Positions 9,703 to 33,118 of a DNA stretch of 40,691 nt are shown piece after piece; within the stretch, counting starts at the first letter, position 1; every line of letters starts with the position of its first letter. Under the pieces are notes generated by a model, which worked only from the letters and a program-made list of their open reading frames with translations, ran no database searches and was not told the origin of the DNA. The DNA lies in NCBI GenBank assembly GCA_900088475.1, contig FLMG01002443.1, positions 1-40,691 of the forward strand. Direction: 5' to 3'. The position numbers and the translations under genes are program-made. This DNA is from Hyphochytrium catenoides. Lineage: Eukaryota; Protista; Hyphochytriomycota.

Positions 9703-10572
9703 ATGTCGAAGCTAAAGGTTCACCATTTGACCTGCGGCTGTCTCTGCCCCTTAGGCGGCTGGCTCTTTGACGGCTTTAGCAGCTCAGTCTTGGGTGGGGG
9801 GTTGCTCTCTTGCCACTGTCTTCTGGTCGAGACACCATCCCAGGGCTTGGTACTGGTCGACACAGGCTTCGGTCTAAAGGATCTCCATCCTTCTTCGGAC
9901 AGAGTGCACCCGATGTTCAAGGCGATCTGTAGGCCAAATATCACGGCCGATATGACAGCAGTTGCGCAAGTCAAGCAGCTGGGCTTCTCTCCTTCTGATG
10001 TCCGGCACATCGTCCTGACACACCTTGATTTTGACCACGCAGGAGGCATAGACGACTTCCCCGAAGCAACGATACACGTCCTGGCCTCTGAGAAAGAGAC
10101 AGCAGAATGGGGAGATGGGATGATTTGCAAGCGGCGATATCGAAAGGAGCAGTTCTGCCATCACACCCGTTGGGAGCTCTATGAGCCGCAGGGCGAGAAA
10201 GAGCAGTGGTTTGACTTTGAAGCCATTAAGCTTAGAGGCCTGCCTGACGATATCCTGCTCGTCCCGCTAAGGGGCCACACCCCTGGCCATTGTGGCGTCG
10301 CTGTCCAGTCGGATAAAGGCTGGCTTCTTCACGCTGGAGATGCCTACTTTTACAGAGACGAAATGAATGTGGCCAAGCCCTATTGTACGCCAGGTTTGAG
10401 GGCTTATCAGTGGCTGATGGACTCAGAAGCTACGTGGCGCAGACAGAACCAACTTAGACTCAGGCAGCTGGTAAAAGACAGCGGGGATAAGGTGACAGTC
10501 TTCTGTGCACATGATTACAAGGAGTTCGAGACGCTGAGGGACGAGTCTTCTCCTACTGCCGCTGCATCGTGA
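9703..10572 (+). CDS. Metallo-beta-lactamase-fold hydrolase (AHL-lactonase-related, bacterial-type), 289 aa, intronless
   Basis: N-terminal HHLTCGCLCP, CHCLLVET, LVLVDTGFG, VRHIVLTHLDFDHAGG (HxHxDH variant), GHTPGH, LHAGDAY and FCAHD give the full MBL metal-ligand set. Clean ATG...TGA. Confidence 0.95.
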   Translation: MSKLKVHHLTCGCLCPLGGWLFDGFSSSVLGGGLLSCHCLLVETPSQGLVLVDTGFGLKDLHPSSDRVHPMFKAICRPNITADMTAVAQVKQLGFSPSDVRHIVLTHLDFDHAGGIDDFPEATIHVLASEKETAEWGDGMICKRRYRKEQFCHHTRWELYEPQGEKEQWFDFEAIKLRGLPDDILLVPLRGHTPGHCGVAVQSDKGWLLHAGDAYFYRDEMNVAKPYCTPGLRAYQWLMDSEATWRRQNQLRLRQLVKDSGDKVTVFCAHDYKEFETLRDESSPTAAAS

Positions 10573-11355: not shown

Positions 11356-11874
11356 ACTTCTGCTATCAAGCTTGTCGAACTATCATTCCCTTTCCCGCTA
11401 TTCAAGGTGTTCTGCTGCATACATATGTTGCTTACCAAGCTTGTTTCCCTAAGCCCGGCTGGCCCGGTCAACATGCTGCAGGTAGTAGGTCTGTGAGCTA
11501 GGTCTGTGAGTAAGGATGCCTAATCGGTGCCAGGAGGGAGCAGGTGTGGTGCGGGGGAGTGGACAACATGAAGAAGAGCAATGGCAGCAGCTTATCTATC
11601 GTCCTTTACTTCTTCTATTCTCCATGCATTCTGAAGAGAAATAAAGCCTTCTTTCTTCCTTTTTCCTTTCTCTTGCTTGGTTGCCCACCGCAGAGGCGGC
11701 GCCCGTCAGTCCTGTGACCTTTCAATCTTAGACAGGCTGTAACGGCTTAATATTCGTGATCAGAACAGCTAGGGTTAGGTATATGCAGAGCGTTTATCAC
11801 TTCCATTCCTAATCGTGTGATGTTACTCTGGCAGGTCAAAGCCTCCCTGATATTGTCTCCTACTTTGTGCGGCT

Positions 11875-12010
11875 GCTCTCTCTCTCGCGCTCTCTCTCTC
11901 TCTCTCTCTTCCTCTCGCCCTCTCTCTCTCTTCCTCTCGCCCTCTCCCTCTCTCTTCCTTTCGCTCTCGCTCTCTCACCCTCTGTCTCTCTCTCTCTCTT
12001 TCTCGCTTGT
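11875..12010. repeat. (CT)n microsatellite tract upstream of 6-TM paralogue 1, probably intronic (5' UTR)
   Basis: Near-pure CT repeat; donor-like gcag|gtcaaa at ~11835 upstream; acceptor-like AGs at ~12225 and ~12454. Confidence 0.75.
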
Positions 12011-12545
12011 CCTTGTCTGACCGCACTGTTAGATTATTGGGGCCTTGGCCAGTTGGTTGCGGTGTTATTCTCTCTATCTCAGCCTCTTCTCACTCTCTGT
12101 ATCTCCTCTGTATGTGTCTCTCCGCTCGCCCTCTTAGTCCTGCTCCAAATTCCCTGTCTCTCTTGCTATTAAGAACTACCGTTGCTTATATCCTGAGCGC
12201 CTTCTCCTTGTCTTTCTTCGACCAGCGTTGCGCTCAACTACTACGAACGCGTCCAAGGAAACCATAGCTGAAGTCCTCGAAGTATCCTGCGCTTTGCTTC
12301 TATCTATTGTTTGACGGCCTTCCGCTAAGAATTTTTGACATACAGAGAGAAATAACGGCATCTGCCAGTTGGGAAGCTCCGTATCTCGGCTATGTAGCGG
12401 TTCCTGGGCATCTCTGCTGCTTCTCTTGCTCCCCTCCTTCTCTCTCGTCCACAGTCTGCCCAAAAAGGCGGACGAAGGCGCGGCCCCAGTCCTCGGTGTA
12501 AGGGAGATTGGTTTGGGGAAGTCAGTGGATCCGTGGAGGAGAGTG

Positions 12546-13877
12546 ATGGCGGCGTTGGAGCTAACTGCCATTGAGCTGTGTCAGAAGCTCGTTAAGCTCT
12601 TGAAGGACATCCAATCTTCCCAAATAGAGACCATTCTGGGTCCGGACAGTGCCTGTCGTATCCATCTAGAGAACGCCAGAACAGTGTTAAGCGAGGTCTT
12701 AAAGGTTCAAAGAGCAGGACCAGAACAGGAGAATATAGAAGCTAAGATTGAGAGTCATCATCAACATTATGTCAAAGAAGCAGGGCGAAAGCATCTTACT
12801 TTCTCCTCACCGCGTGCCACCATGCCTATAGCCCCGGCACCACCAGCAGAAGGCAATACAGGAGACAAGGCGAGGCAGTTCAGACAACAGCCTCCTCCTG
12901 TGGCCGTTGCGAGGCTCCAGACCTTCTCTCACGCACGGAAGAAGAAAGGCACGGCCGCGGTGAGTCATTCTGAGGTTCCACACATTGGGCACGCATCGGC
13001 CGGAACGACCAACCAAGGGAAGAGGCGAGGAAACGCGGTTGTGAACCGCCCTGAGGAGAAGCTTATCACCCTGATAGCGGTGCTTCAACGGACAGACCTC
13101 GGGCTTGATGGGAGCAGCACGACAGCGATGATGGCCATCTGCGGTAGACGCTTTGGCACTTGGTACCAGAAGAGGGAGAAATTGATGACAAACTTGATGT
13201 GGCTCTCGGTGTTGGGCTACCTAACGGCTCTTTATCTGCCTGCCTTTGCCTCAGCCAAAGTCTTGCAGGGCCTTCTGATGATCGGAAGTATGGGTTGGAC
13301 TTGCTTCCATTTTCTCTCAATGCTCAACTGGCGGATTGTCCTCCTGACCTTGCAAATGTTTGACACCTGGTTCTTTCTTCTCTACTCGTTTGTCCCAATG
13401 GTTGCTTTGTGGTTCATTGACTGCCACGATCCAACCTTAGCCGTTGCCAACCTTCTCTCTACGTTCGCTACGGTGGTGGTCTATGTCTTCTACGATGCCA
13501 TGCCGCTGTCCAAGAGGCGTCGGGTGCGATATTTGTTGCTTGCAGGAGTGATGCTTGGCATCCTTCAAATGTATCATCGGTATAGGGATTTTCCACCACC
13601 ATGCAACTATTACTTCGACTTTTCGAGAGGAATCTTCCTACCTGAAGATGTGGACTGCGCGACCGGCAAGGGCATTGAAGAGACGAAGAAGTGGAGCATG
13701 TCACTTGCGGACTTTTTCACCCAGACATCTCAGACAACTCTCTTGCTCATGCTAAAGATCGTCTTCTTGGCCTTCCGCTTCCCAGACTGCTGCATCATGC
13801 TACGATACAGAGTCAAGCTTGTAGAGACAGAAAGAGCGCGAATGCCTGGGGAGAGAGTGCAGCAAAGACCCTCCTAG
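12546..13877 (+). CDS. Uncharacterised ~6-TM membrane protein, paralogue 1 (443 aa from ATG 12546)
   Basis: Long intronless ORF. First ATG (MAALELTAIELCQKL) aligns with the paralogue N-termini. About six hydrophobic helices; shared motifs include N..L.TL..FD..FF, YDAMP, PPPCNY, KWSMS..DF and FRFPD...LR.R. Confidence 0.88.
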   Translation: MAALELTAIELCQKLVKLLKDIQSSQIETILGPDSACRIHLENARTVLSEVLKVQRAGPEQENIEAKIESHHQHYVKEAGRKHLTFSSPRATMPIAPAPPAEGNTGDKARQFRQQPPPVAVARLQTFSHARKKKGTAAVSHSEVPHIGHASAGTTNQGKRRGNAVVNRPEEKLITLIAVLQRTDLGLDGSSTTAMMAICGRRFGTWYQKREKLMTNLMWLSVLGYLTALYLPAFASAKVLQGLLMIGSMGWTCFHFLSMLNWRIVLLTLQMFDTWFFLLYSFVPMVALWFIDCHDPTLAVANLLSTFATVVVYVFYDAMPLSKRRRVRYLLLAGVMLGILQMYHRYRDFPPPCNYYFDFSRGIFLPEDVDCATGKGIEETKKWSMSLADFFTQTSQTTLLLMLKIVFLAFRFPDCCIMLRYRVKLVETERARMPGERVQQRPS

Positions 13878-15537
13878 TCTACGAGGAGAAGGGCGAACCT
13901 GGCATAATTGCGGGCCTGGCTGCCTACTCCTTTTACTGTGGCGCCATCTTTACCGACTCAGTAGGCCCAATAGCCGTATCTCCGATCCACCGTTAACGAG
14001 ACTTTCAGCATACCTATAGACCAACCGTCGTGCTCGCTGCGTGATGGCGAGGAACGCATCTAAGAAAAGAGAGGATGATGTGGTAGGCCGCCTGTTAATA
14101 ATCACCCGGCACCGTCTCATCTTAGTAAGGAGATGAGGAGCAGCCTCACTTCTTCCAGCCAGTGCCTGTCAAGCCAAGTAACAGGTAATGCTGCGGCCGT
14201 CCGCCAATAACAGAGCTGGGGTGTGGGAGAATTTCCCCACTACTTCTCCGCCAGTTGAAGTCATTTAGTTCCCTTCTCGCCCGCAGCATCACTGCATTAG
14301 GTGCTGTATGTGGACCGATATGCTCCAAAATATCAGGTTTGAAGAGAGACGGGTGAAGATGACAGGCCCGTTCACGTTTCTCAGAAGGCACTACCATTAG
14401 TAGGGACGATGAGCGCAGGGCAGTTCCGTAAGGTCCCTGCGATTGGCATAGGCCGAATAATCCTGGGCATCCTGTCTGCCTGTTGCAGGAGAAGAGCACA
14501 GACCTTGTGACGATGATGGGCCTGCAAATTTAGACATAAGCTGGCATGGTTTGCTCCTCCCAAATAGTTCATCAGGAGAAGGGTAGGATGGCTCTTATTC
14601 TGGGCTGCGTCGAGTTGGCAGTGAACATGCATTCTTATTGCTGTTTTTGCAGGAGGAGTCGCCTATGCTTTCATTATTACGTGGTAGAGAGCTATTCCTC
14701 ATGCACTGTAGAGCTCTCTGAGTTATGTCTGTTGAACATATTTTCAAGCCGTGTAAGATGATAAGAGTGGCGGAGGTCTCTTTGAGGGGAGAAGACTCCC
14801 TAAGATGACCTTTGAGGTGATAAATTGAGGAAGAGGTTGATCGTCTTAAGCTCACTTATACTCTTCTCATGATTGAGCTGCTGATGCATGAAGCTCTCTA
14901 CCCTAGTAGTGACATAATCTCAGCAACGTTATTGCTATGTCCTAGAGCCTAATGTCTAAAGCTTTAGCTAAAGCGTCCTTACTCAGCCAAGAAGAACGGA
15001 GCTAAGAACAGGACATGCTGCTCTTGATTGGATGCAATATGGATGACAGGGGCTTGAGCTGTGGAGAAGAGAGCAATAGGGAAGGACAAGGAAAGAAAGG
15101 TAAAGCTGGCAGTCTGGCGTTACCTCAGAATAAACCCAAACTGCTGAAGAAGAAAAGGATTGGCTCATCACTTGCCATAACGTTCACAAGACTGACAAGC
15201 TTTCTGTCCTTACCCATAGAAGAGGTCCGCGAGAAGTTGCTGCACGAGCCTCTTGAGCGAGAGAGCTTCAGGATAGTCCAGCTAGCAGAGCAATGTCATA
15301 CTACTGCTGGGTGCGTGGTGTTGTGCTTTATTTCTCCTTGTTGACCCTCTCTAGGGATGATGAGGGTCTTGAAGTCTCTAAGAAGAATGTCTAGCATACG
15401 AAAGAGACAGACGTAAAGATTCGTCCTCGGGAGGAGGTACTAGAGGGGAAGATGCTAAGAAGGAAGACGGGGCGGAAGAGGAGGAAGTGATGAAGCTGGG
15501 ATAATGAGAACTAAAGATGTTGGAAGGAGAGAGGTGA

Positions 15538-16400
15538 TTATGGTGAAGAGCCACCGAAGGAGCCGTAGGGTCCTGCTACCAGTGTTAAACGCCGTTGGCG
15601 ATAGTCTTGATAGAAGTCAAGGTAAGTCGGAGGTCGTAAGGGGCGGCTAAAGATGATGTAGGCGAGCAGGAAGACAGGAGGTATCAAATCTTCAACAACT
15701 AGTGGAAAAGTTGTGCCAGCGGCCTTCACACTTTCGTTAGCGTTAGCGTTAGTTGTAATTACAGCTCGATGTCGAAGGGAATCGCTGGCCATCATCCTAT
15801 CATTGCCCTCCTTTCTAGGCTTACACCGATGCTTGCAACTGCATGATCGTCATCCGTCGAGCCTCATCAATGTAGTGCAGCAGGTCTGGCAGGGCGTGAT
15901 CATGGGCACAATGAAGGCGATGGAGAATTATATATCTATCTCAATCAAAAAGCCTTTGAGCGGCGCAACCTTCAGAAGTGCACCGCTGGGTGTGGACACC
16001 ATGAGCAATGCAAATATCTTTTTTCTTTCGCACTTTCCTCACACCATCCACCGAACACCGCTTAGTCTTACCACCATGATGCCCAGTGGTGCAGATTGTC
16101 TAAGGAATGTCTTAGTTCTTAACGTCAAGTACCTTGCAGCGCCTGCCGCATGTTGTTGTCCTTACTTCATAGAGCTTTTTGTAACTAACATAATGACAAA
16201 GCTTAAACTTCCAACTGTTCCCAGGGCCGTCGTCCCGCATCTCATCAACTTATCCTCTAACTGCTCAGAAGGCAATCATGAGAGTACTTGTAACGACACG
16301 AAGGCCATAATGAGACCAGCCGCACGCCTAGTAGCCCTGCTGTTGGGCAGCATCCCATGATGGTGGGTTGCCGGGCAAGAGCTAAACGTTCGGCCAATGA
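15538..16400 (-). pseudogene. Decayed membrane transporter, possibly MFS_2/GPH (sugar-cation symporter) family
   Basis: Hydrophobic minus-strand frame with several stops: ...GKCERKKIFALLMV..., (shifted frame) ALPDLLHYIDEARR, and C-terminal NANANESVKAAGTTFPLVVEDLIPPVFLLAYIIFSRPLRPPTYLDFYQDYRQRR. These resemble the GPH MLPDVxDxDE motif and the terminal P.xFLL...YPL...RR helix. Confidence 0.35.
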
Positions 16401-17462
16401 AGGGTCTACGTACAGAAGACATTAGCCAGCACAAACAGTCTGCTGCTGCATCATCAATCATCATCATCGGGAGGCGGAGGAGACTAGCGTGACATAGGCC
16501 AGCTTGCCCCTTCTCTCTAAGTAGTAGCTTGCATCGGTCGTGGTGGTGATGGCAGCGACAGTAATTGTCTTCGACCAGAACAGTTGGAGGTAATGGGTGA
16601 TGTGATAACTGCAATTCAGTAATCTTGTAGAGGATATAACGCCCATGTCTGAGGGGAGGCTGAGGCGTGGTGTGGCTGCATCATCATCACTCCCTCCTGC
16701 GCTAGGACGTACGGCCCATCAACCTCTACGTCTTATGCCCTATGATCTCGCTGATACAAGCTGACGGGCTCAAGGGACTCCTTCTACTCTCTCCCGTCCT
16801 TCCCTGTCTGTCTCTCTCTATCTCTCAGCACCACCCGATCATACTGACCTCCATAACCTTGCTTTCCGACGATGCCTATTCCTTTCGTCATGCTGTAGAT
16901 AAGACGTGTTGACTCTAATATCCCTTCTCTGTCTTTTCTATCTCTCCGTGTGCAGTCACGGGCTCGCTTAGTACCTTGTTCGCAGTCTGTCTGACCTCTC
17001 TTCTGTCGCTACGGCATTCCTTTTGCCATCGTCCCTGGCTGTTGCTCTTTTGCCACCTCCCTCTGGCTACTCTAGTGCTCTCTCATGATCGCTTGGTCTG
17101 AGTCGCCCTTCCTCCAGCTATGAGAACTCCTTCTAGACGCCCTTACCAGCACACAACGTGAAGTTCTGCTGCTCCTGGAGCAAAGGCAAATCGTCGGGTA
17201 TAACACTGCAGCGAGCAGTGCAGCTTTGTTTTGCTGATGCACTGCCGAACAACAACATAAGGGGAAGCAGCTGGGCTCTTTTGCCTGCGACCACATTCCA
17301 AGTCACACAAACAGGCGGAAACTTAAGGACCCGAGTTAACATATCTAGCGGAACCCCACAAAGTATCCACAGATCAAGAGGCTCTGTACATAAGAACTTA
17401 GAGCATCGGAAGGTTCTCCACCTTCGGCATAAAAACATTCGTTAGCCGGCTGTCACACGCCG

Positions 17463-18806
17463 ATGACGGGTGACATGCTGCATTCAATCTCCTCTCCAAC
17501 ATGTCAAGAGTCTGTCAGAGGAATGGTTAGGGCTTCCACCACCGTACCAGATCTTTGTCAAACCTTCATCAACGGACTACGATCCCACTCAGCATTATTA
17601 CTTAGCATTCAACCTCCTGAAAGCGGTAATGGTGCATCCCAGCAGGCGTTATTAGAAGTAAAGGCGGAGGTGGAAACAATGTTGCGCAATTTTGGCCCCA
17701 ACCTAGCCTTCCCATTGCCGTTTAAGGGGCAGCCCACTTCTAATAGCAATGTAGAGAGAAAGCGACCAGCTGCCGTCTTGCCGCAGGCATCACCAACGCC
17801 ATCTGCCAGCCCTTTTCCATCTACGAGAGGGTCCAATAACAAGCAGAGAACTTTGAAGAGACGGCTACTGATCTCTGTCCAACCTTACACAGAGCTCACG
17901 GTTAAAGAGAGCAGTTTGACAGGTATGGAGAAGCTCTTTGGGAAGAGCTTCGCACTCTTTTGGTGGAGATGGAAGAGAATCCTCATGCCTCTCAGCGTTC
18001 TTGCCCTACTTACCTCCATGATCCAGGTCTTGGTCTATCTCTCTGCCTCATTGACAGATAGCGAAAGAGTGCTTTGGGGCTGGTTGTGGGTCCCAACAGG
18101 AGCTTTAGGGATGATGGATATGAGTTCGGTGGCTAATTATCATCTCTTCCTCACGTCTCTGCGGTCGTTGGACGCCTTCTTCTTTCTCTTGGAGACAACA
18201 CTCTTTGTGGTTGCGCTTGCAGGGACCTTCTGCTTCAGCCTTAGTGGCTGTCTTTATGCAGCCGCTACGTTTTGCTGCTTCTGTTGCTTTGTCATATGTT
18301 ATGATGGTCTTCCCAGCTCTGTAAGGCGACGACTGAAGGGTTTCTACATTATTTGGTGTCTCTATGTCCCTACAACTCTAGCCCTTATCTACTTCAGAGT
18401 GCCAGAGAACATGTGCAGGTATCGGCTAGACCTTATCCATGGCTTCGTCGACGAGAAAGACGTTCTGGAGGGCAAGAAGACACTGTCAAAGTGGAGTTTG
18501 TCTGTCGTAGAGTTCTGCCTCAATCGAGGTTTTGGCTTTCTGGTGTTACTCCTGAAAACGACATACTCAGCTTTTAGACATCCCACCGATACGGCCATAC
18601 TTCGGACAAGATCAAGAGTTCTAGAGAAGAAATCAGGGGCTAGTGACGCTGCAGCTGAGGGTAGTGGAGGGCCAGCGCCTACTTTTGAGCCTCGAACGAG
18701 CATTGCACCAGCCGCTCTAGGGGAAGGAGAAGCTGGGGCTGAGGACCAGGAGCTTGTTTTAGCAGCCAGAAGGAGTAGAGAGATGTCGGGTGGCGGTACT
18801 AGCTAG
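17463..18806 (+). CDS. Uncharacterised ~6-TM membrane protein, paralogue 2 (447 aa; alternative start ATG 17523)
   Basis: Intronless ORF: DLCQTF helix, RRLLISVQPYTEL, TGMEKLFGKSF, ANYHLFLTSLRSLDAFFF, YDGLP, YFRVPENMCRYRLDLIHG, KWSLSVVEFCLNRG, FRHPTD. Confidence 0.9.
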   Translation: MTGDMLHSISSPTCQESVRGMVRASTTVPDLCQTFINGLRSHSALLLSIQPPESGNGASQQALLEVKAEVETMLRNFGPNLAFPLPFKGQPTSNSNVERKRPAAVLPQASPTPSASPFPSTRGSNNKQRTLKRRLLISVQPYTELTVKESSLTGMEKLFGKSFALFWWRWKRILMPLSVLALLTSMIQVLVYLSASLTDSERVLWGWLWVPTGALGMMDMSSVANYHLFLTSLRSLDAFFFLLETTLFVVALAGTFCFSLSGCLYAAATFCCFCCFVICYDGLPSSVRRRLKGFYIIWCLYVPTTLALIYFRVPENMCRYRLDLIHGFVDEKDVLEGKKTLSKWSLSVVEFCLNRGFGFLVLLLKTTYSAFRHPTDTAILRTRSRVLEKKSGASDAAAEGSGGPAPTFEPRTSIAPAALGEGEAGAEDQELVLAARRSREMSGGGTS

Positions 18807-19799
18807 AGAAAGCAGCTGGCAGCCATCAGAAGTCCATTTGTGCTCATCATGCTCACTTACTCAGCAGGATCAGCCCTGATGTTGACGAGATGAGATACTT
18901 GCGTTTATCTAAGATCTCATCCTGTCGTTTGCCTAATGGAAGAAGAGACACTTGTCTACCTCTGTGCGTGTTCGGCTGGCCTTGCCATGACGATTCAGCA
19001 AAGATAGAGGGATTAGCACTTTGATACAAGAGAAGGACTGGTCTACACGGTTATTATATTGACCGCTTAAGAAGATAGGGCCACAACTGCAGTCTGGCAT
19101 TGTAAACCGCACTATACGAGGCGCACCAACAACAATGATCAGTCTTTAGAGCGGCCTAGAGTCTCGCAACACGTAAGGGTCGTGGCATCCAGAAAAAGGA
19201 ACCGCACAAGTGATCCAAGCATGACAGACAATACCACTTGTTCTTTTATGGCCCTTCAAGTCCGTCCATCCTATGTGTGGGCTGCTCAAGGTGTGCGCTG
19301 TGGACCAAGATAAAATAGTCTCAGGAGGGTAATGGACAGGAATGGAGCAAGAGAAGAGAAGGACTTACGCTAGTCTCCTAGAAGAGAGCATTGACGAAGC
19401 GTTGCACGAAAAAAAATAAAAAGTTGGATGAGTTCGAAGGGACCGGGCAGCATGCTTTATTTAAAAAGAAAGGCTCACGTGGAGTTTTTCAAAAGTAGTA
19501 AAGTTATAGACCTGCAAATCTCCAGGTCAGCGGCGGACTGCTGGCATCGGTTCAGTACTAGAATCATAGATAAAGGCAAGGTGCTGGCTTTCGAGATGCA
19601 ATAGTTACTGGAGGCGCGCATTTCATCAGGAGGCAGAACAGATCTGACCGCCCAGGATGTGGCGGCGCATACTGGGAGACATACAATGACGCTCACGAGG
19701 AAGAATGCAGCTTTATTACTCTTCGTGACCTGATGATGAGCAGCACCACCAACTCTGACGCCTAGCTCACTGGTCACCTCTCTCCCTCCATAAACCCAA

Positions 19800-20173
19800 G
19801 CTCACTCATAGCACATTTGCATCAGCCGCCCTTCTAGTGCCAGCGTAAACCCGAAGCACGAATGTCCTACGACTAGCCTAGGGATAAGAGCACAGGCAAT
19901 CATTGATCTCACTCAGGTTGGGCTGTTCCTTACGTCAGAATATAAGTGCAGCGGCAGCCCATAAGAAAGGGAGAAAAATGTTGGCAGCCAGGACAAGGCT
20001 CACTCATAGCCCATCTGCATCAGTCGCCCTTCCAGTCTACCCCAGCGTTAACCCGAAGCACGAATGTCCTACCACTGACTAGCCTAGGCAAGAGCACAGG
20101 CGACCATGGATCCTCACCCAGAACCCAGCTTAGGCTGTCCCCTTCCATCAGAAGTTAAGAGTGCGCCGGCAGC
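19800..20173. repeat. Diverged direct repeat, two ~160-175 bp copies
   Basis: Copies at ~19800-19958 and ~19998-20173. Both begin gctcactcatagc, share an identical 23-mer aacccgaagcacgaatgtcctac (19848, 20050), share gactagcctagg and aagagcacaggc, and end in cggcagc. Confidence 0.9.
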
Positions 20174-21134
20174 AAGTTTTCCAGGAGACGCGACATTCTT
20201 AGAAAATCTGTAACGGCCACTTTCCTTGCGCCTAACTTCGGACGTTTACACAAACGCCTGTTGATCCTATTTCTTATTCAAGGTACTGGTAGCCAGTCTT
20301 CGGTTGGCTAGCGTTAAACTGGGCTTTCTTCCGAAAATACTTGCAGGGATTGATCAGATGGGAAGCACCGTTACTCTTCTTTAGTGCCGTGTATAGAGCC
20401 TGACTTGGTTGCTGACAGAGAATGGACTGGAAGAAGGGAAGCAATAGGCCACACCGACAGAACTATGGGAACACAGAGCCTACCACCATCTCTCATTCCT
20501 TGCCAGGCAGGAGAAGGCTTGTTGAGGAAGGAAGACTTCTTAGCCTTGCACCAGGATCCTGGGCCCATTGTCCAGAAGAATGTTCAACCTGCTGCACGAT
20601 GGGTGCAGTTGGCCGGAAGCAACGGACTGGCGCCTCATGTTAGTCCTCTTAGCCCATCACCATCATCGAGTCATCGGCGCTTCTTTTCCCCTCCTTCACC
20701 CTTCTTCCTTGCCACTCGATGAGCATTCGGCTGTAATATTAGGTGCAACACAGTGAGCGAATTCGAGATGTTAAATCGGGACCAGGTGCAGTTATATCGA
20801 TGGCGCTCTCTCTTCCTTCTCTCCATCTTCTCGTCTATCTGAAATGCCGTCGAAGGAGCGGAGTTCTCCACAACCTGCGCCGACAAGTCGAGCAGCGATT
20901 GGTCGTTTGATTGCACTTACCGGGATCTTTAATAGACAAAGAGAGGAGGCAACTGCCCAAAGGTTGTTGTTTGCTACCCCCCACCCAACCATCTCTCTGT
21001 CCACATACTTTTCTCTTTCTTCTTGTGCTCTTTGTGGCATCAGTCCCGACGCCTACTGCGCCAAGGCCTAAGAGTGACCCGCAAGTGTGACTGCCTACGT
21101 TTGGAAGGACAGAGACGGCGACTGATGCACTAAA

Positions 21135-22349
21135 ATGCTGGGATATCAGCTTGACATACCTGTCGCCACTAATCTCTATCAAGCTTTTCTTACATATCTC
21201 CAAAGCCAGTCCTCGTCGGCGATAGATGACGCATCATGTCAGCTTTTGGTGGAAGCACGCCTTGAGATAGATCGATTGCTTGCGCCAAGACCAGTAACGG
21301 TTGCGACAAAGGGCACTATTGTTCCCGCTCTCTCCTCTCCAAGGCCAGTTGCTCCAAGTAAAGCCGAAAGAGGACGGGTACAGGGCGACGTGCGACGAAG
21401 TTCTTCCATTGCGCCATTGAACCCTCGAGATCTCGGAGTCTCTTCCATAGGGCATGTCACCTCGACCGGAGGCACATCAATCGCACCTATCGGCTCTGAG
21501 CAAAGAGTCAAGAAAAGGCGCATCCTAGTAGCGATCAACCCTTATACAGCTCTCAGTGAGATAGAAAGCAATCTTACTCTGATGGAACTGTTGTTTGGCC
21601 CAAGCTTCACTGTCTCCTACTGGAGGAAAAAGAGAGCTTTGGCACCTATTTCGCTATTTGTTGCCTTTCTGGGCATGCCCTCTGTGCTCCTTTATCTCAC
21701 CCTGCCGATGACAGACTTGCAAAATCTCCTCATGGCCCTGCTAATATGGCTGCCAATGGTTGCCCTAGGTTTTGTCAACACCGTTGCAGTGGTCAACGTC
21801 AGACTTCTGGTGAAGTCCTTGCGGTCTTTTGAAGCCCTTTACTTCATAGGAGAAGGTTCACTCTTTGCTAGCTCACTCGCAGCTACTTTTTGTCTGTCAT
21901 TCATCGGTTGGATGTACGCGTTGGTGGCCTTTTCAGCCTTTTGCACCTTTTTCTTATGCTACGACAGTCTTCCGACGTCTGTCCGCAAGCGACTCAAGAG
22001 GCTATACGTGGCCTGTTCTCTCTTTGTTGCCGCTCAGCTAGCTCTTATATACTTTAGAGTTCCTCCGAGAATGTGCTCTTATCGCTTAGACCCTCTCCAC
22101 GGGCTGCTGGATGAACAGATCCCTGCTGATGCTGAAAAGATTAACAGCTGGAGCATCTCGGTTGTGGAACTCTGTCTAAATCGTGGTCTGAGCTTCTTGG
22201 TGCTGCTTCTAAGAGCGACCTACTTCGTCCTCAGGCATCCGAATGACTCTGTTATTATGAAAAGCAGGCTGAGAGTGCTTGAGCTCTTGCCAACGAAGCC
22301 TCGTGGAGAGTCCTCTACTTCTCAACCTCTCCTAAATTCACTAGGTTAG
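21135..22349 (+). CDS. Uncharacterised ~6-TM membrane protein, paralogue 3 (404 aa)
   Basis: Intronless ORF: NLYQAF helix, RRILVAINPYTAL, TLMELLFGPSF, VNVRLLVKSLRSFEALYF, YDSLP, YFRVPPRMCSYRLDPLHG, SWSISVVELCLNRG, LRHPND. Visibly closest to paralogue 2. Confidence 0.9.
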   Translation: MLGYQLDIPVATNLYQAFLTYLQSQSSSAIDDASCQLLVEARLEIDRLLAPRPVTVATKGTIVPALSSPRPVAPSKAERGRVQGDVRRSSSIAPLNPRDLGVSSIGHVTSTGGTSIAPIGSEQRVKKRRILVAINPYTALSEIESNLTLMELLFGPSFTVSYWRKKRALAPISLFVAFLGMPSVLLYLTLPMTDLQNLLMALLIWLPMVALGFVNTVAVVNVRLLVKSLRSFEALYFIGEGSLFASSLAATFCLSFIGWMYALVAFSAFCTFFLCYDSLPTSVRKRLKRLYVACSLFVAAQLALIYFRVPPRMCSYRLDPLHGLLDEQIPADAEKINSWSISVVELCLNRGLSFLVLLLRATYFVLRHPNDSVIMKSRLRVLELLPTKPRGESSTSQPLLNSLG

Positions 22350-31113: not shown

Positions 31114-33118
31114 ATGGCAAACAACAACGCTCAAGCCGCGCTCATCGGCCAAGAAGCCCGGATCTCTGAGGTTCTGTCTCGCAAGAGCCAGACCTCTGGC
31201 CTCCCAATGACGACCAAAGACAGCGGCGTCCTGACTCCAGGCAACCAGACCCCTGATATCTATAACATGAACTACAACGGCGAGATGCCTAATCCTTGGG
31301 CTCTCAATCGCATCGGTCTGCTGATCAATTATTTCTCTGTGGGCATTATCAAGGGCGCGTCTGCAGCTCTGATCTATCCCATCGTCGTCGTGCAGAACAA
31401 GAAGGATCCAGCAGTCGTGCAGTCTTCTAAGCAGCTTGTGAACCTCTGGTGGTCGTTCAAGATCTTCTTCGGAATCTTGACTGATTGCTTCCCCATCTTT
31501 GGCCTTAAGCGCAAGCCCTACATCTTCTCAGGCTGGCTCATCACTGGTATCATCTTTGTTATCATCGCCTTCATGTCCGAAATGTCCGTCCCTACTCTGG
31601 TGGTTATGCTGAGCTTGGCCTGCTTTAGTTACGTAGCAGCAGACGTCGCTGGGGATGGCTATGTCGTGATGATGGCCCAGCAAGAGCCCATCGAAAAGCG
31701 TGGCAACGTTCAGTCTATGATCTACATTGCTCGCTTCGTAGGTGAGGCTCTCGCTACGCTGCTGGTCGGCTTCACCTTCTCGGGTCCCCGCATTATGTGC
31801 TCTGACTATGAGGAGGACTCCACCATTGCTTGCGCCCCAGAGATGCCTAAGGGCTATCGGAAAGAATTTACCACGGACTGGTGCCACAAAAGCTGCGCTG
31901 ACGCGACGTTTGACTTTGACATCACGGTCAGCTCTCTCTCTGTCATCCTCGCTGTCGTTGCTATTGTCGGTGTTCCTTTCTACTGGCTCCTGACTGAAGA
32001 AAAGACTGTCAGAGAATCCTTCGTTGGCATGATGAAGAACTTCTGGGTTATCCTGCAGAAGAAGGCTGTTTGGCAGATCATTCTCTACACAGTTAACTCC
32101 ACCATGTTCATGGCTGTCAGCAACAACGCGAAGGATAACACCAACAGCGAGTGGCTCTCCTTCACTCCTCTGCAGAACTCGATCCTGACGGTGATGGATT
32201 ACATTTTCCTTGCTCTTGGTCTCTACGTTGTCAAGACATGGTTCATTAACGTGTCCTGGAGAAAGCTTATTGTCTATGGAACGCTGTTGCAGATCTTCTT
32301 TGGTGCCCTGTATCTGATCATTGTCTACAATGTCTGGAGAAACTCTTATTTCTACATGGTAAGCATTGGCATTGGTTTGTTCCCTCTACTCGACTTCTGT
32401 TGTCTACTCTATCTTCCCCCATGCAATGCGTAAGATTTATGCCACTCTCTCCACCCTCCGCTTCCCTTCCCGAAGTCTCTTAAAAAGCCTAATGAGTTCA
32501 GCGCGTTAACGCTTGCTCTCCTGTTTGCAGTTCACAGATGTGACTTACCAGTTCGTCAGCACTCTGAACTTCGTGGTGGGCGTACTGTACATTGTTGAAG
32601 TGTCCGAGCCTGGCTATGAGGCGTTGACCTACTCCCTCATTACTACGGCACATAATACGATGCTTCCTCTCGGCGTCCTTCTATCCAACCAGATCTCAGG
32701 CTGGTTTGCTCTTAGCCAGGCGGACATCAAGACCGATAGCCCCTATGTTCGCAACCAGTTCACCTTGTGCTGGGTGCTGACCACCGTCATCAACCTTCTC
32801 TCTCTCCTCACCCTCCCTCTCCTGCCTCGGCAGAAGAAAGAGGCACGTGATCTGCTTGCACAAGGAGGAACCTCTCGCAATTGGGCTATTGTCTGCGTCG
32901 TCTTCGTGCTCGTGACCATGGTGTACTCTACCGTGGGCAACTTCGCCACATTGTCCGATTCGCTCAAGTGTTCGGCATTTCTAGGAAAAGGTGGAAAGGA
33001 CTGCCCTAAGCAATCCAAAGTCCCTGTCTATCTCCTGGTCTCGTTCTACCTGGGCTTCGTGGTTGTTACAACGTTTATTATAGGTTATCTCCCTCGCTTC
33101 ACCGGCAGACGACGTTAG
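31114..33118 (+). CDS. Folate-biopterin transporter (BT1/FBT, MFS), 2 exons: 31114-32358, 32531-33118 (~610 aa)
   Basis: WSFKIFFGILTDCFPIFGLKRKPY, YVAADVAGDG, AQQEPIEKRGNVQS, VSWRK, VEVSEPGYEALTYSLITT, LPLLPRQK. Intron 32359-32530 (gtaagc...ttgcag) joins in frame: FYM|FTDV. Confidence 0.93.

Follow-up and report, generated by a model that had tools for sequence, protein, structure and literature searches.

A large six-helix membrane protein family of Hyphochytrium catenoides, with repeated two-unit fusions and a possibly otopetrin-like fold

The analysis concerned a 40,691-nt stretch of Hyphochytrium catenoides DNA (contig FLMG01002443.1; hereafter the window) and three plus-strand open reading frames (ORFs) within it, labelled genes A, B and C. 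Each codes a single unit of six transmembrane (TM) helices. By profile match and residue signature, the three genes are members of a six-TM family shared by saprolegnian oomycetes and by hyphochytrids, which are sister to the oomycetes and have been little studied. The family is among the largest of the hyphochytrid genome and is without a name, a Pfam model or a paper. Several members carry two units in one chain, and branching of the units indicates that such fusions arose repeatedly. The favoured reading, which is held tentatively, is that the units pair to form an otopetrin-like conduit for ions, most likely protons.

Genes A, B and C had been described from the DNA alone (the original prediction) as co-oriented, intronless copies of one architecture, and each of these points held. 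The ORFs were found on the plus strand with start-to-start distances of 4.9 kb (A to B) and 3.7 kb (B to C). Every ORF runs from the N-terminal module to the C-terminal motif without interruption, in a genome with a mean of 3.64 introns per gene (PMC5795050). Pairwise BLASTP gave 41% identity between B and C (E 2e-91), 28% between A and B across the TM core (E 7e-21) and 22% between A and C (E 2e-15). This similarity is far beyond chance, and on these alignments the three are real paralogues. The motifs listed in the prediction were each present in A, B and C (an N-terminal two-helix module; T.M....G..F...W; N..L....L..(F/L)(D/E)..(F/Y)F; YD.(M/L)P followed by basic residues; WS.S..(D/E)(F/L); and R.P.......R.(V/L).E) and recurred in a family alignment of 17 paralogues that included the three genes. 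A tree was built from 84 units, with gene A left out. B and C were sisters in this tree (support 99), inside a clade that was itself well supported and consisted mostly of single-unit copies.

Gene A was much more divergent than B and C, its best paralogue elsewhere in the genome being 32% identical. In the alignment it retained the equivalents of G160, N225, D281, R288 and P374 (residues numbered as in B throughout). The TM3 Glu (E244) was replaced by Tyr, and the TM6 Asn-Arg pair (N354, R355) by Gln-Thr; with these residues lost, the product of gene A may be a non-canonical partner. The mechanical start of its ORF was a TTG at 12369, and the 59 open codons between this and the first ATG (12369-12545) code a signal-peptide-like hydrophobic stretch. 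No paralogue carries a counterpart of this extension, which is therefore probably not translated.

The 61.0 Mb genome was searched in six frames, yielding 97 matches with B as the query and 80 with A. After matches in one frame or adjacent to each other were merged, about 79 loci remained, so that the family extends far beyond the three copies from which it was predicted. Most loci were open frames of 400-700 amino acids (aa), nearly all uninterrupted; about 12 consisted of a single ORF with two complete units, and about 10 were broken by in-frame stops or split. Many were arrayed, on contigs C1919, C274, C2762 and C2901. Pairwise identity between units had a median of 26%, with 64% for the closest pair. 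Synonymous sites were saturated even in the closest pair (proportion of synonymous differences, pS, 0.68-0.82), with a lower non-synonymous distance (dN, 0.31-0.53), a combination which argues that the ORFs have been kept over a long time. As estimated from these substitutions, the copies are anciently diverged and under purifying selection, and the prediction that they are rapidly diverging was not upheld.

The same figures bear on whether the copies are non-functional or selfish DNA, either decaying or carried as cargo of a virus or mobile element. Multiple copies, some of them broken, and intron-free genes in an intron-rich genome would suit such an origin. Against it stand long intact ORFs at a median identity this low, with dN well below the saturated synonymous distance (dS), and orthologues in oomycetes and another protist. 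A viral structure library returned no match, and hence no sign of viral origin was found. The repeat scan of the window showed no transposon-like flanks or flanking repeats; its findings were limited to a CT-rich microsatellite and a tandem duplication of 200 bp. Pfam detected no mobile-element or viral domain in 20 other ORFs of the window. Selfish or dead DNA was consequently judged very improbable.

A profile built from the 17 aligned paralogues was searched against 1.84 billion representative proteins, giving 50 matches at E ≤ 1e-3 and 14 at E ≤ 1e-30. The only named matches were hypothetical proteins of two saprolegnian oomycetes: H257_12484 of Aphanomyces astaci (XP_009838004.1 / W4FXV2; E 3e-45; one cluster across many strains) and THRCLA_09534 of Thraustotheca clavata (A0A1V9YVS9; E 4e-37). 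Both were matched over profile positions 8-388, from the N-terminal hairpin to the strand after TM6. They share with the Hyphochytrium units the hairpin, the strand and helix before TM1, the conserved N, YD..P...R, W.F/S and the post-TM6 CVIIKSR strand; they differ in that they appear single-copy per genome, bear long additional C-terminal tails and are annotated as hypothetical or transmembrane. The near-invariant family signature (G before TM1, N in the turn between TM2 and TM3, YD..P...R following TM4 and P..C....SR.R..E following TM6) was complete in B and C, and G, N, YD.MP...R and P.C were kept in A.

The strongest matches were genomic contigs of another organism, from the sibling sequencing runs SRR28521184 and SRR28521185. 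None of the members from these runs (L021, L038, L039, L040) exceeded 38% identity to a Hyphochytrium copy, and two-unit genes orthologous to Hyphochytrium ones were found among the genes of this relative. Orthology of a two-unit gene at such low identity places the expansion before the split, and on this reasoning the family was already expanded in the common ancestor of the two organisms. Weaker profile matches were metagenomic, many of them two-unit. The original prediction had likened the genes to an unannotated TM family expanded in oomycetes and other protists. Oomycete homologues do exist, but the expansion was observed in Hyphochytrium and in the relative behind the two runs, the family appearing single-copy in the named oomycetes.

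Searches for a known family were otherwise blank. Pfam gave nothing above noise in A, B, C and 20 relatives, in agreement with the predicted lack of any enzyme, major facilitator superfamily (MFS), G-protein-coupled receptor or classical channel signature. A word-index protein search with B returned nothing, and an exact-match query of public assemblies with B yielded no record. A lead to TMEM117 (language-model score 0.75, sub-threshold) was dropped after PF15113 gave no match in the genome. No paper on the family was found, and the genome paper is silent on it (PMC5795050). Literature searches on H257_12484 and THRCLA_09534, on the Sequence Read Archive runs and on otopetrin in stramenopiles found nothing relevant.

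The unit was modelled with AlphaFold2 (AF2) in two forms. The model of B had a predicted local distance difference test score (pLDDT) of about 90 across residues 145-375, with a disordered linker and tail. A two-unit paralogue (L014:1333-3477, 714 aa) was modelled with a predicted template modelling score (pTM) of 0.72 and a pLDDT of about 90 in both TM bodies. The parts of the unit are listed in Table 1. Hydropathy and the B model both counted six TM helices, as had been predicted, and the model placed them at residues 161-194, 199-223, 236-255, 260-280, 292-310 and 348-372. The N-terminal hairpin has the motif LCxxLxxxLQxxPxLD ... ARxEID, which was kept in the 17 paralogues and in the oomycete homologues. 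The segment before TM1 has the motif PYTELTxxESNLTxMExxxG and ends in the 95%-conserved Gly160. In the two-unit model the cytosolic segments before TM1 and after TM6 were beta-strands (pLDDT 87-93). The equivalents of the pre-TM1 segment were strands at 90-96 and 100-102 (pLDDT 87-89), and those of the post-TM6 motif were 15-residue strands at 329-343 and 669-683, of which blocks 331-340 and 671-680 had a pLDDT of 93 and the ends were less confident. These modelled strands account for the hydrophobic strand and the C-terminal motif of the original prediction.

No signal peptide was detected in the unit; TM1 is preceded, and TM4 and TM6 are followed, by basic residues. On this basis both termini should be cytosolic. 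On the predicted topology, the surface facing outward would consist of two turns of about 4 residues and one loop of about 35 residues (311-347), the sole long outward loop, with a beta-hairpin and a conserved Cys. Among 85 non-redundant units, conservation was highest at D281 (99%), G160 (95%), N225 (93%), R288 (89%) and P374 (81%), all at the cytosolic boundary. Within the membrane, position 237 of TM3 was acidic (D/E) in 92% of units and E244 was Glu in 69%; the two are seven residues apart on the same helix face. N354 and R355 of TM6 were conserved, and position 365 was basic (R/K) in 73/74. The hypervariable stretches were the cytosolic low-complexity parts. TM1 and TM2 were poorly conserved, and the outward loop between TM5 and TM6 had a length-variable insert.

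This distribution is relevant to the function that was first proposed, a repertoire of chemoreceptors or ligand-gated channels in which each paralogue senses another external ligand. A large family in tandem arrays, with birth and death of copies (about 10 broken), would be expected of such a repertoire, as would poorly conserved TM1 and TM2 and an insert of variable length in the TM5-6 loop. However, only a small part of the unit is exposed to the outside, most of the conservation and most of the hypervariability are on the cytosolic side, the copies separated long ago and are constrained rather than fast-evolving, and the named oomycete relatives appear single-copy. Neither seven TM helices with the fold of insect odorant and gustatory receptor (OR/GR) type chemoreceptor channels, nor the S1-S4 bundle with a re-entrant S5-S6 pore loop and an Ion_trans profile that marks voltage-gated-type 6-TM cation channels, was found in the units. 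A sensory repertoire is thus improbable. The predicted receptor part of a receptor or channel family was set aside, and the channel part was retained as the best guess, on structural grounds given below.

The residues at the cytosolic boundary could instead belong to a membrane-embedded enzyme, for example a lipid-modifying one, whose active site at the interface of cytosol and membrane would be built from Asn225, Asp281 and Arg288 together with the Glu-Ser...Thr segment before TM1. The near-invariance of these residues and of G160, all at one boundary, would be in keeping with such a site. The same four positions are equally explicable as structural caps and a salt bridge, however; neither Pfam nor the PDB gave a match to an enzyme family, no His or metal-binding motif was present, and it would be strange for a single enzyme to have some 80 paralogues. 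This alternative was considered about as doubtful as the sensory one.

Natural two-unit ORFs (Table 1), of which the genome has at least 11, gave information on how the units are used. In several of them the N-terminal hairpin was duplicated too. The two units of one protein were sisters in the unit tree for P0001 (support 99), L025 (99) and L014 (88). First and second units fell in separate clades for L027/L028/L029, the two L024 genes, P0002/L030 and P0006/P0008. At least six changes are required by the well-supported branches, and by the branching of this tree fusions arose repeatedly. Repeated fusion of like units is expected of a side-by-side dimer, and we infer that the units work as side-by-side pairs. 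The two-unit model agrees with this, its pTM being 0.72 and its cytosolic strands, which are predicted to be paired, having a pLDDT of about 90. SemiSWEET and SWEET, and the bacterial and eukaryotic forms of TMEM175, are known pairs of half-size and fused-dimer membrane proteins. The present family is like them in that the unit occurs both free and tandem-fused in one chain, implying that free units assemble side by side. It differs in having no sequence or fold match to them, and in that the fusions were repeated within one family and one genome.

The two-unit model was compared with known structures using Foldseek. Otopetrins were the best matches, with probabilities of 0.6-0.8 and TM-scores of 0.33-0.39, which are grey-zone scores. 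A structure search independent of Foldseek ranked otopetrins 1, 2, 3 and 6, and they were the sole structures aligned across the whole 12-helix body. Otopetrin structures are later than the AF2 training cut-off. MFS and other 12-TM proteins failed to align with the model. The MFS was rejected as a candidate, with no Pfam match, TM-scores of 0.10-0.18 to the two-unit model and no MFS chain in the VIA list.

Likenesses to otopetrins (OTOP1-3, CeOtop8; PF03189) were found beyond the overall match. XtOTOP3 has cytosolic termini, two homologous 6-TM halves and a long linker on the outer side that joins the final two helices of a half (PMC6483595). The family resembles it in the predicted cytosolic termini, in the 6-TM repeat unit and in the long outward loop between unit helices 5 and 6, comparable to the TM11-12 linker of OTOP3. 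As in otopetrins, unit helices 3 and 6 bear conserved polar residues. In XtOTOP3 the functionally critical interface residues D509, E321 and H669 and the FYR motif are found on TM6, TM9 and TM12, which are helices of the corresponding positions; otopetrins also have Gln-Asn/Asp-Tyr constriction triads besides this last-helix motif (PMC6483595). Taken together the structural matches weakly suggest an otopetrin-like fold for the modelled pair.

Several results weigh against this assignment. Foldseek scores of this size can come from common helical arrangements, and the match is a lead rather than proof. Sequence similarity to otopetrins was absent: PF03189 gave no match at E ≤ 1 in A, B and C and none at E ≤ 10 in the six-frame genome. 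The FYR motif was absent, the family consensus in TM6 being F-c-L-N-R-g, and no Gln-Asn/Asp-Tyr triad could be mapped onto the units. A sequence profile search of the PDB did not rise above noise, the best match being a HAT-repeat protein at E 0.028; a language-model atlas gave only sub-threshold matches, with the two-unit protein falling in no named cluster. The conservation peak at the cytosolic face would fit an enzyme or a docking site as well. Twelve TM helices in one chain are not found in A, B or C, each of which codes one 6-TM unit only; the two-unit paralogues have 6+6. The family units also carry cytosolic beta-strands and an N-terminal hairpin, neither of which otopetrins are known to have.

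Ranked second is a non-conducting membrane organiser or adaptor, in which the six-TM body would act as an anchor or membrane-shaping bundle, comparable to MARVEL/synaptophysin and tetraspanin proteins, and the recruitment of different partners for each paralogue would be left to the hairpin, the beta-platform and the variable, disordered tails on the cytosolic side. Both the hypervariability of the cytosolic low-complexity stretches and the grouping of the best-conserved residues at the cytosolic face agree with this. But structural matches of the MARVEL/synaptophysin and tetraspanin type, which are four-helix bundles, spanned TM3-6 only (4/6 helices) and scored no better than soluble designed bundles, so the likeness is generic. 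Conserved charges within TM3 and TM6 would be unusual in a mere anchor, and the repeated fusion of units points to a defined two-unit body. An organiser was accordingly regarded as unlikely, if the least unlikely of the alternatives.

A channel was kept as the best guess because otopetrin proton channels are the only structures matched over the whole architecture. In the proposed arrangement two units would be juxtaposed, giving a 12-helix body laid out like the otopetrin double barrel; single-unit proteins, A, B and C among them, would form homodimers or heterodimers, and in the fused paralogues one chain would supply both units. Protons or another small ion would pass along a polar track to which TM3 contributes its conserved acidic residues and TM6 its Asn, Arg and Lys; assembly and regulation would fall to the cytosolic strands, the hairpin and the variable tails. 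Ion conduction itself is speculative. If the arrangement is correct, the family would be a new stramenopile class of proton or ion channels and a natural system for the origin of double-barrel channels from half-size units, and the apparently single-copy orthologue of the crayfish-plague pathogen Aphanomyces astaci would be a tractable entry point. If it is wrong, the family would still be a well-defined orphan membrane fold deserving a Pfam entry.

A stronger form of this proposal is that genes of the A/B/C type are free-standing half-otopetrins, 6-TM units which dimerise into the otopetrin double barrel and have survived as single genes in stramenopiles. This is unlikely. Were it true, the in-frame fusions would replay the duplication behind the 12-TM proton channels of animals, channels of the otopetrin type would extend beyond animals, and about 80 paralogues pairing combinatorially would equip a zoosporic protist with an extensive set of pH or ion conduits.

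Table 1. Positions of the three genes in the window, of the parts of one unit (as placed in gene B) and of the two-unit paralogues elsewhere in the genome.
Feature	Position	Strand	Remarks
Gene A	12546..13877	+	443 aa from first ATG; divergent family member
Gene B	17463..18806	+	447 aa; canonical single-unit family member
Gene C	21135..22349	+	404 aa; canonical single-unit member, tandem sister of B
N-terminal helical hairpin, B residues 15-76	17505..17690	+	Helices 15-49 and 57-76, pLDDT 56-77
Low-complexity linker, B 77-130, length-variable	17691..17852	+	Predicted disordered, pLDDT <50; mostly gap columns
Pre-TM1 segment, B 131-160	17853..17942	+	Basic patch, hydrophobic beta-strand, two short amphipathic helices
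Six-TM core, B 161-372	17943..18578	+	Hydropathy; AF2 secondary structure, pLDDT 88-96
Post-TM6 motif HPxDCVIIRSRxRxxE, B 373-390	18579..18632	+	Predicted cytosolic beta-strand
Two-unit ORFs, 636-1138 aa	Contigs C3177, C2762, C2901, C4272, C1669, C3378, C1932, C3702, C3269, C3024		Loci L014, L023-L032

ORFs in the remainder of the window were annotated with Pfam, and Rfam gave no match over the whole length of the window. The CT-rich, microsatellite-like tract lies at 11854-12032 (about 180 bp), some 500 bp upstream of the start codon of gene A, and the tandem duplication (about 200 bp; identity between copies 87-94%) is in the B-C spacer at 19800-20112. A plus-strand ORF of 289 aa at 9703-10572, 2 kb upstream of gene A and unrelated to the family, contains a clear metallo-beta-lactamase fold domain (PF00753, E 5e-20). 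The fourth long ORF (31114-32433, plus strand), also unrelated to A, B and C, codes a BT1 folate-biopterin transporter (PF03092, E 1e-17). It is followed on the same strand by an ORF with a weak MFS match (32513-33118), and the two are probably exons of one gene separated by a short intron.

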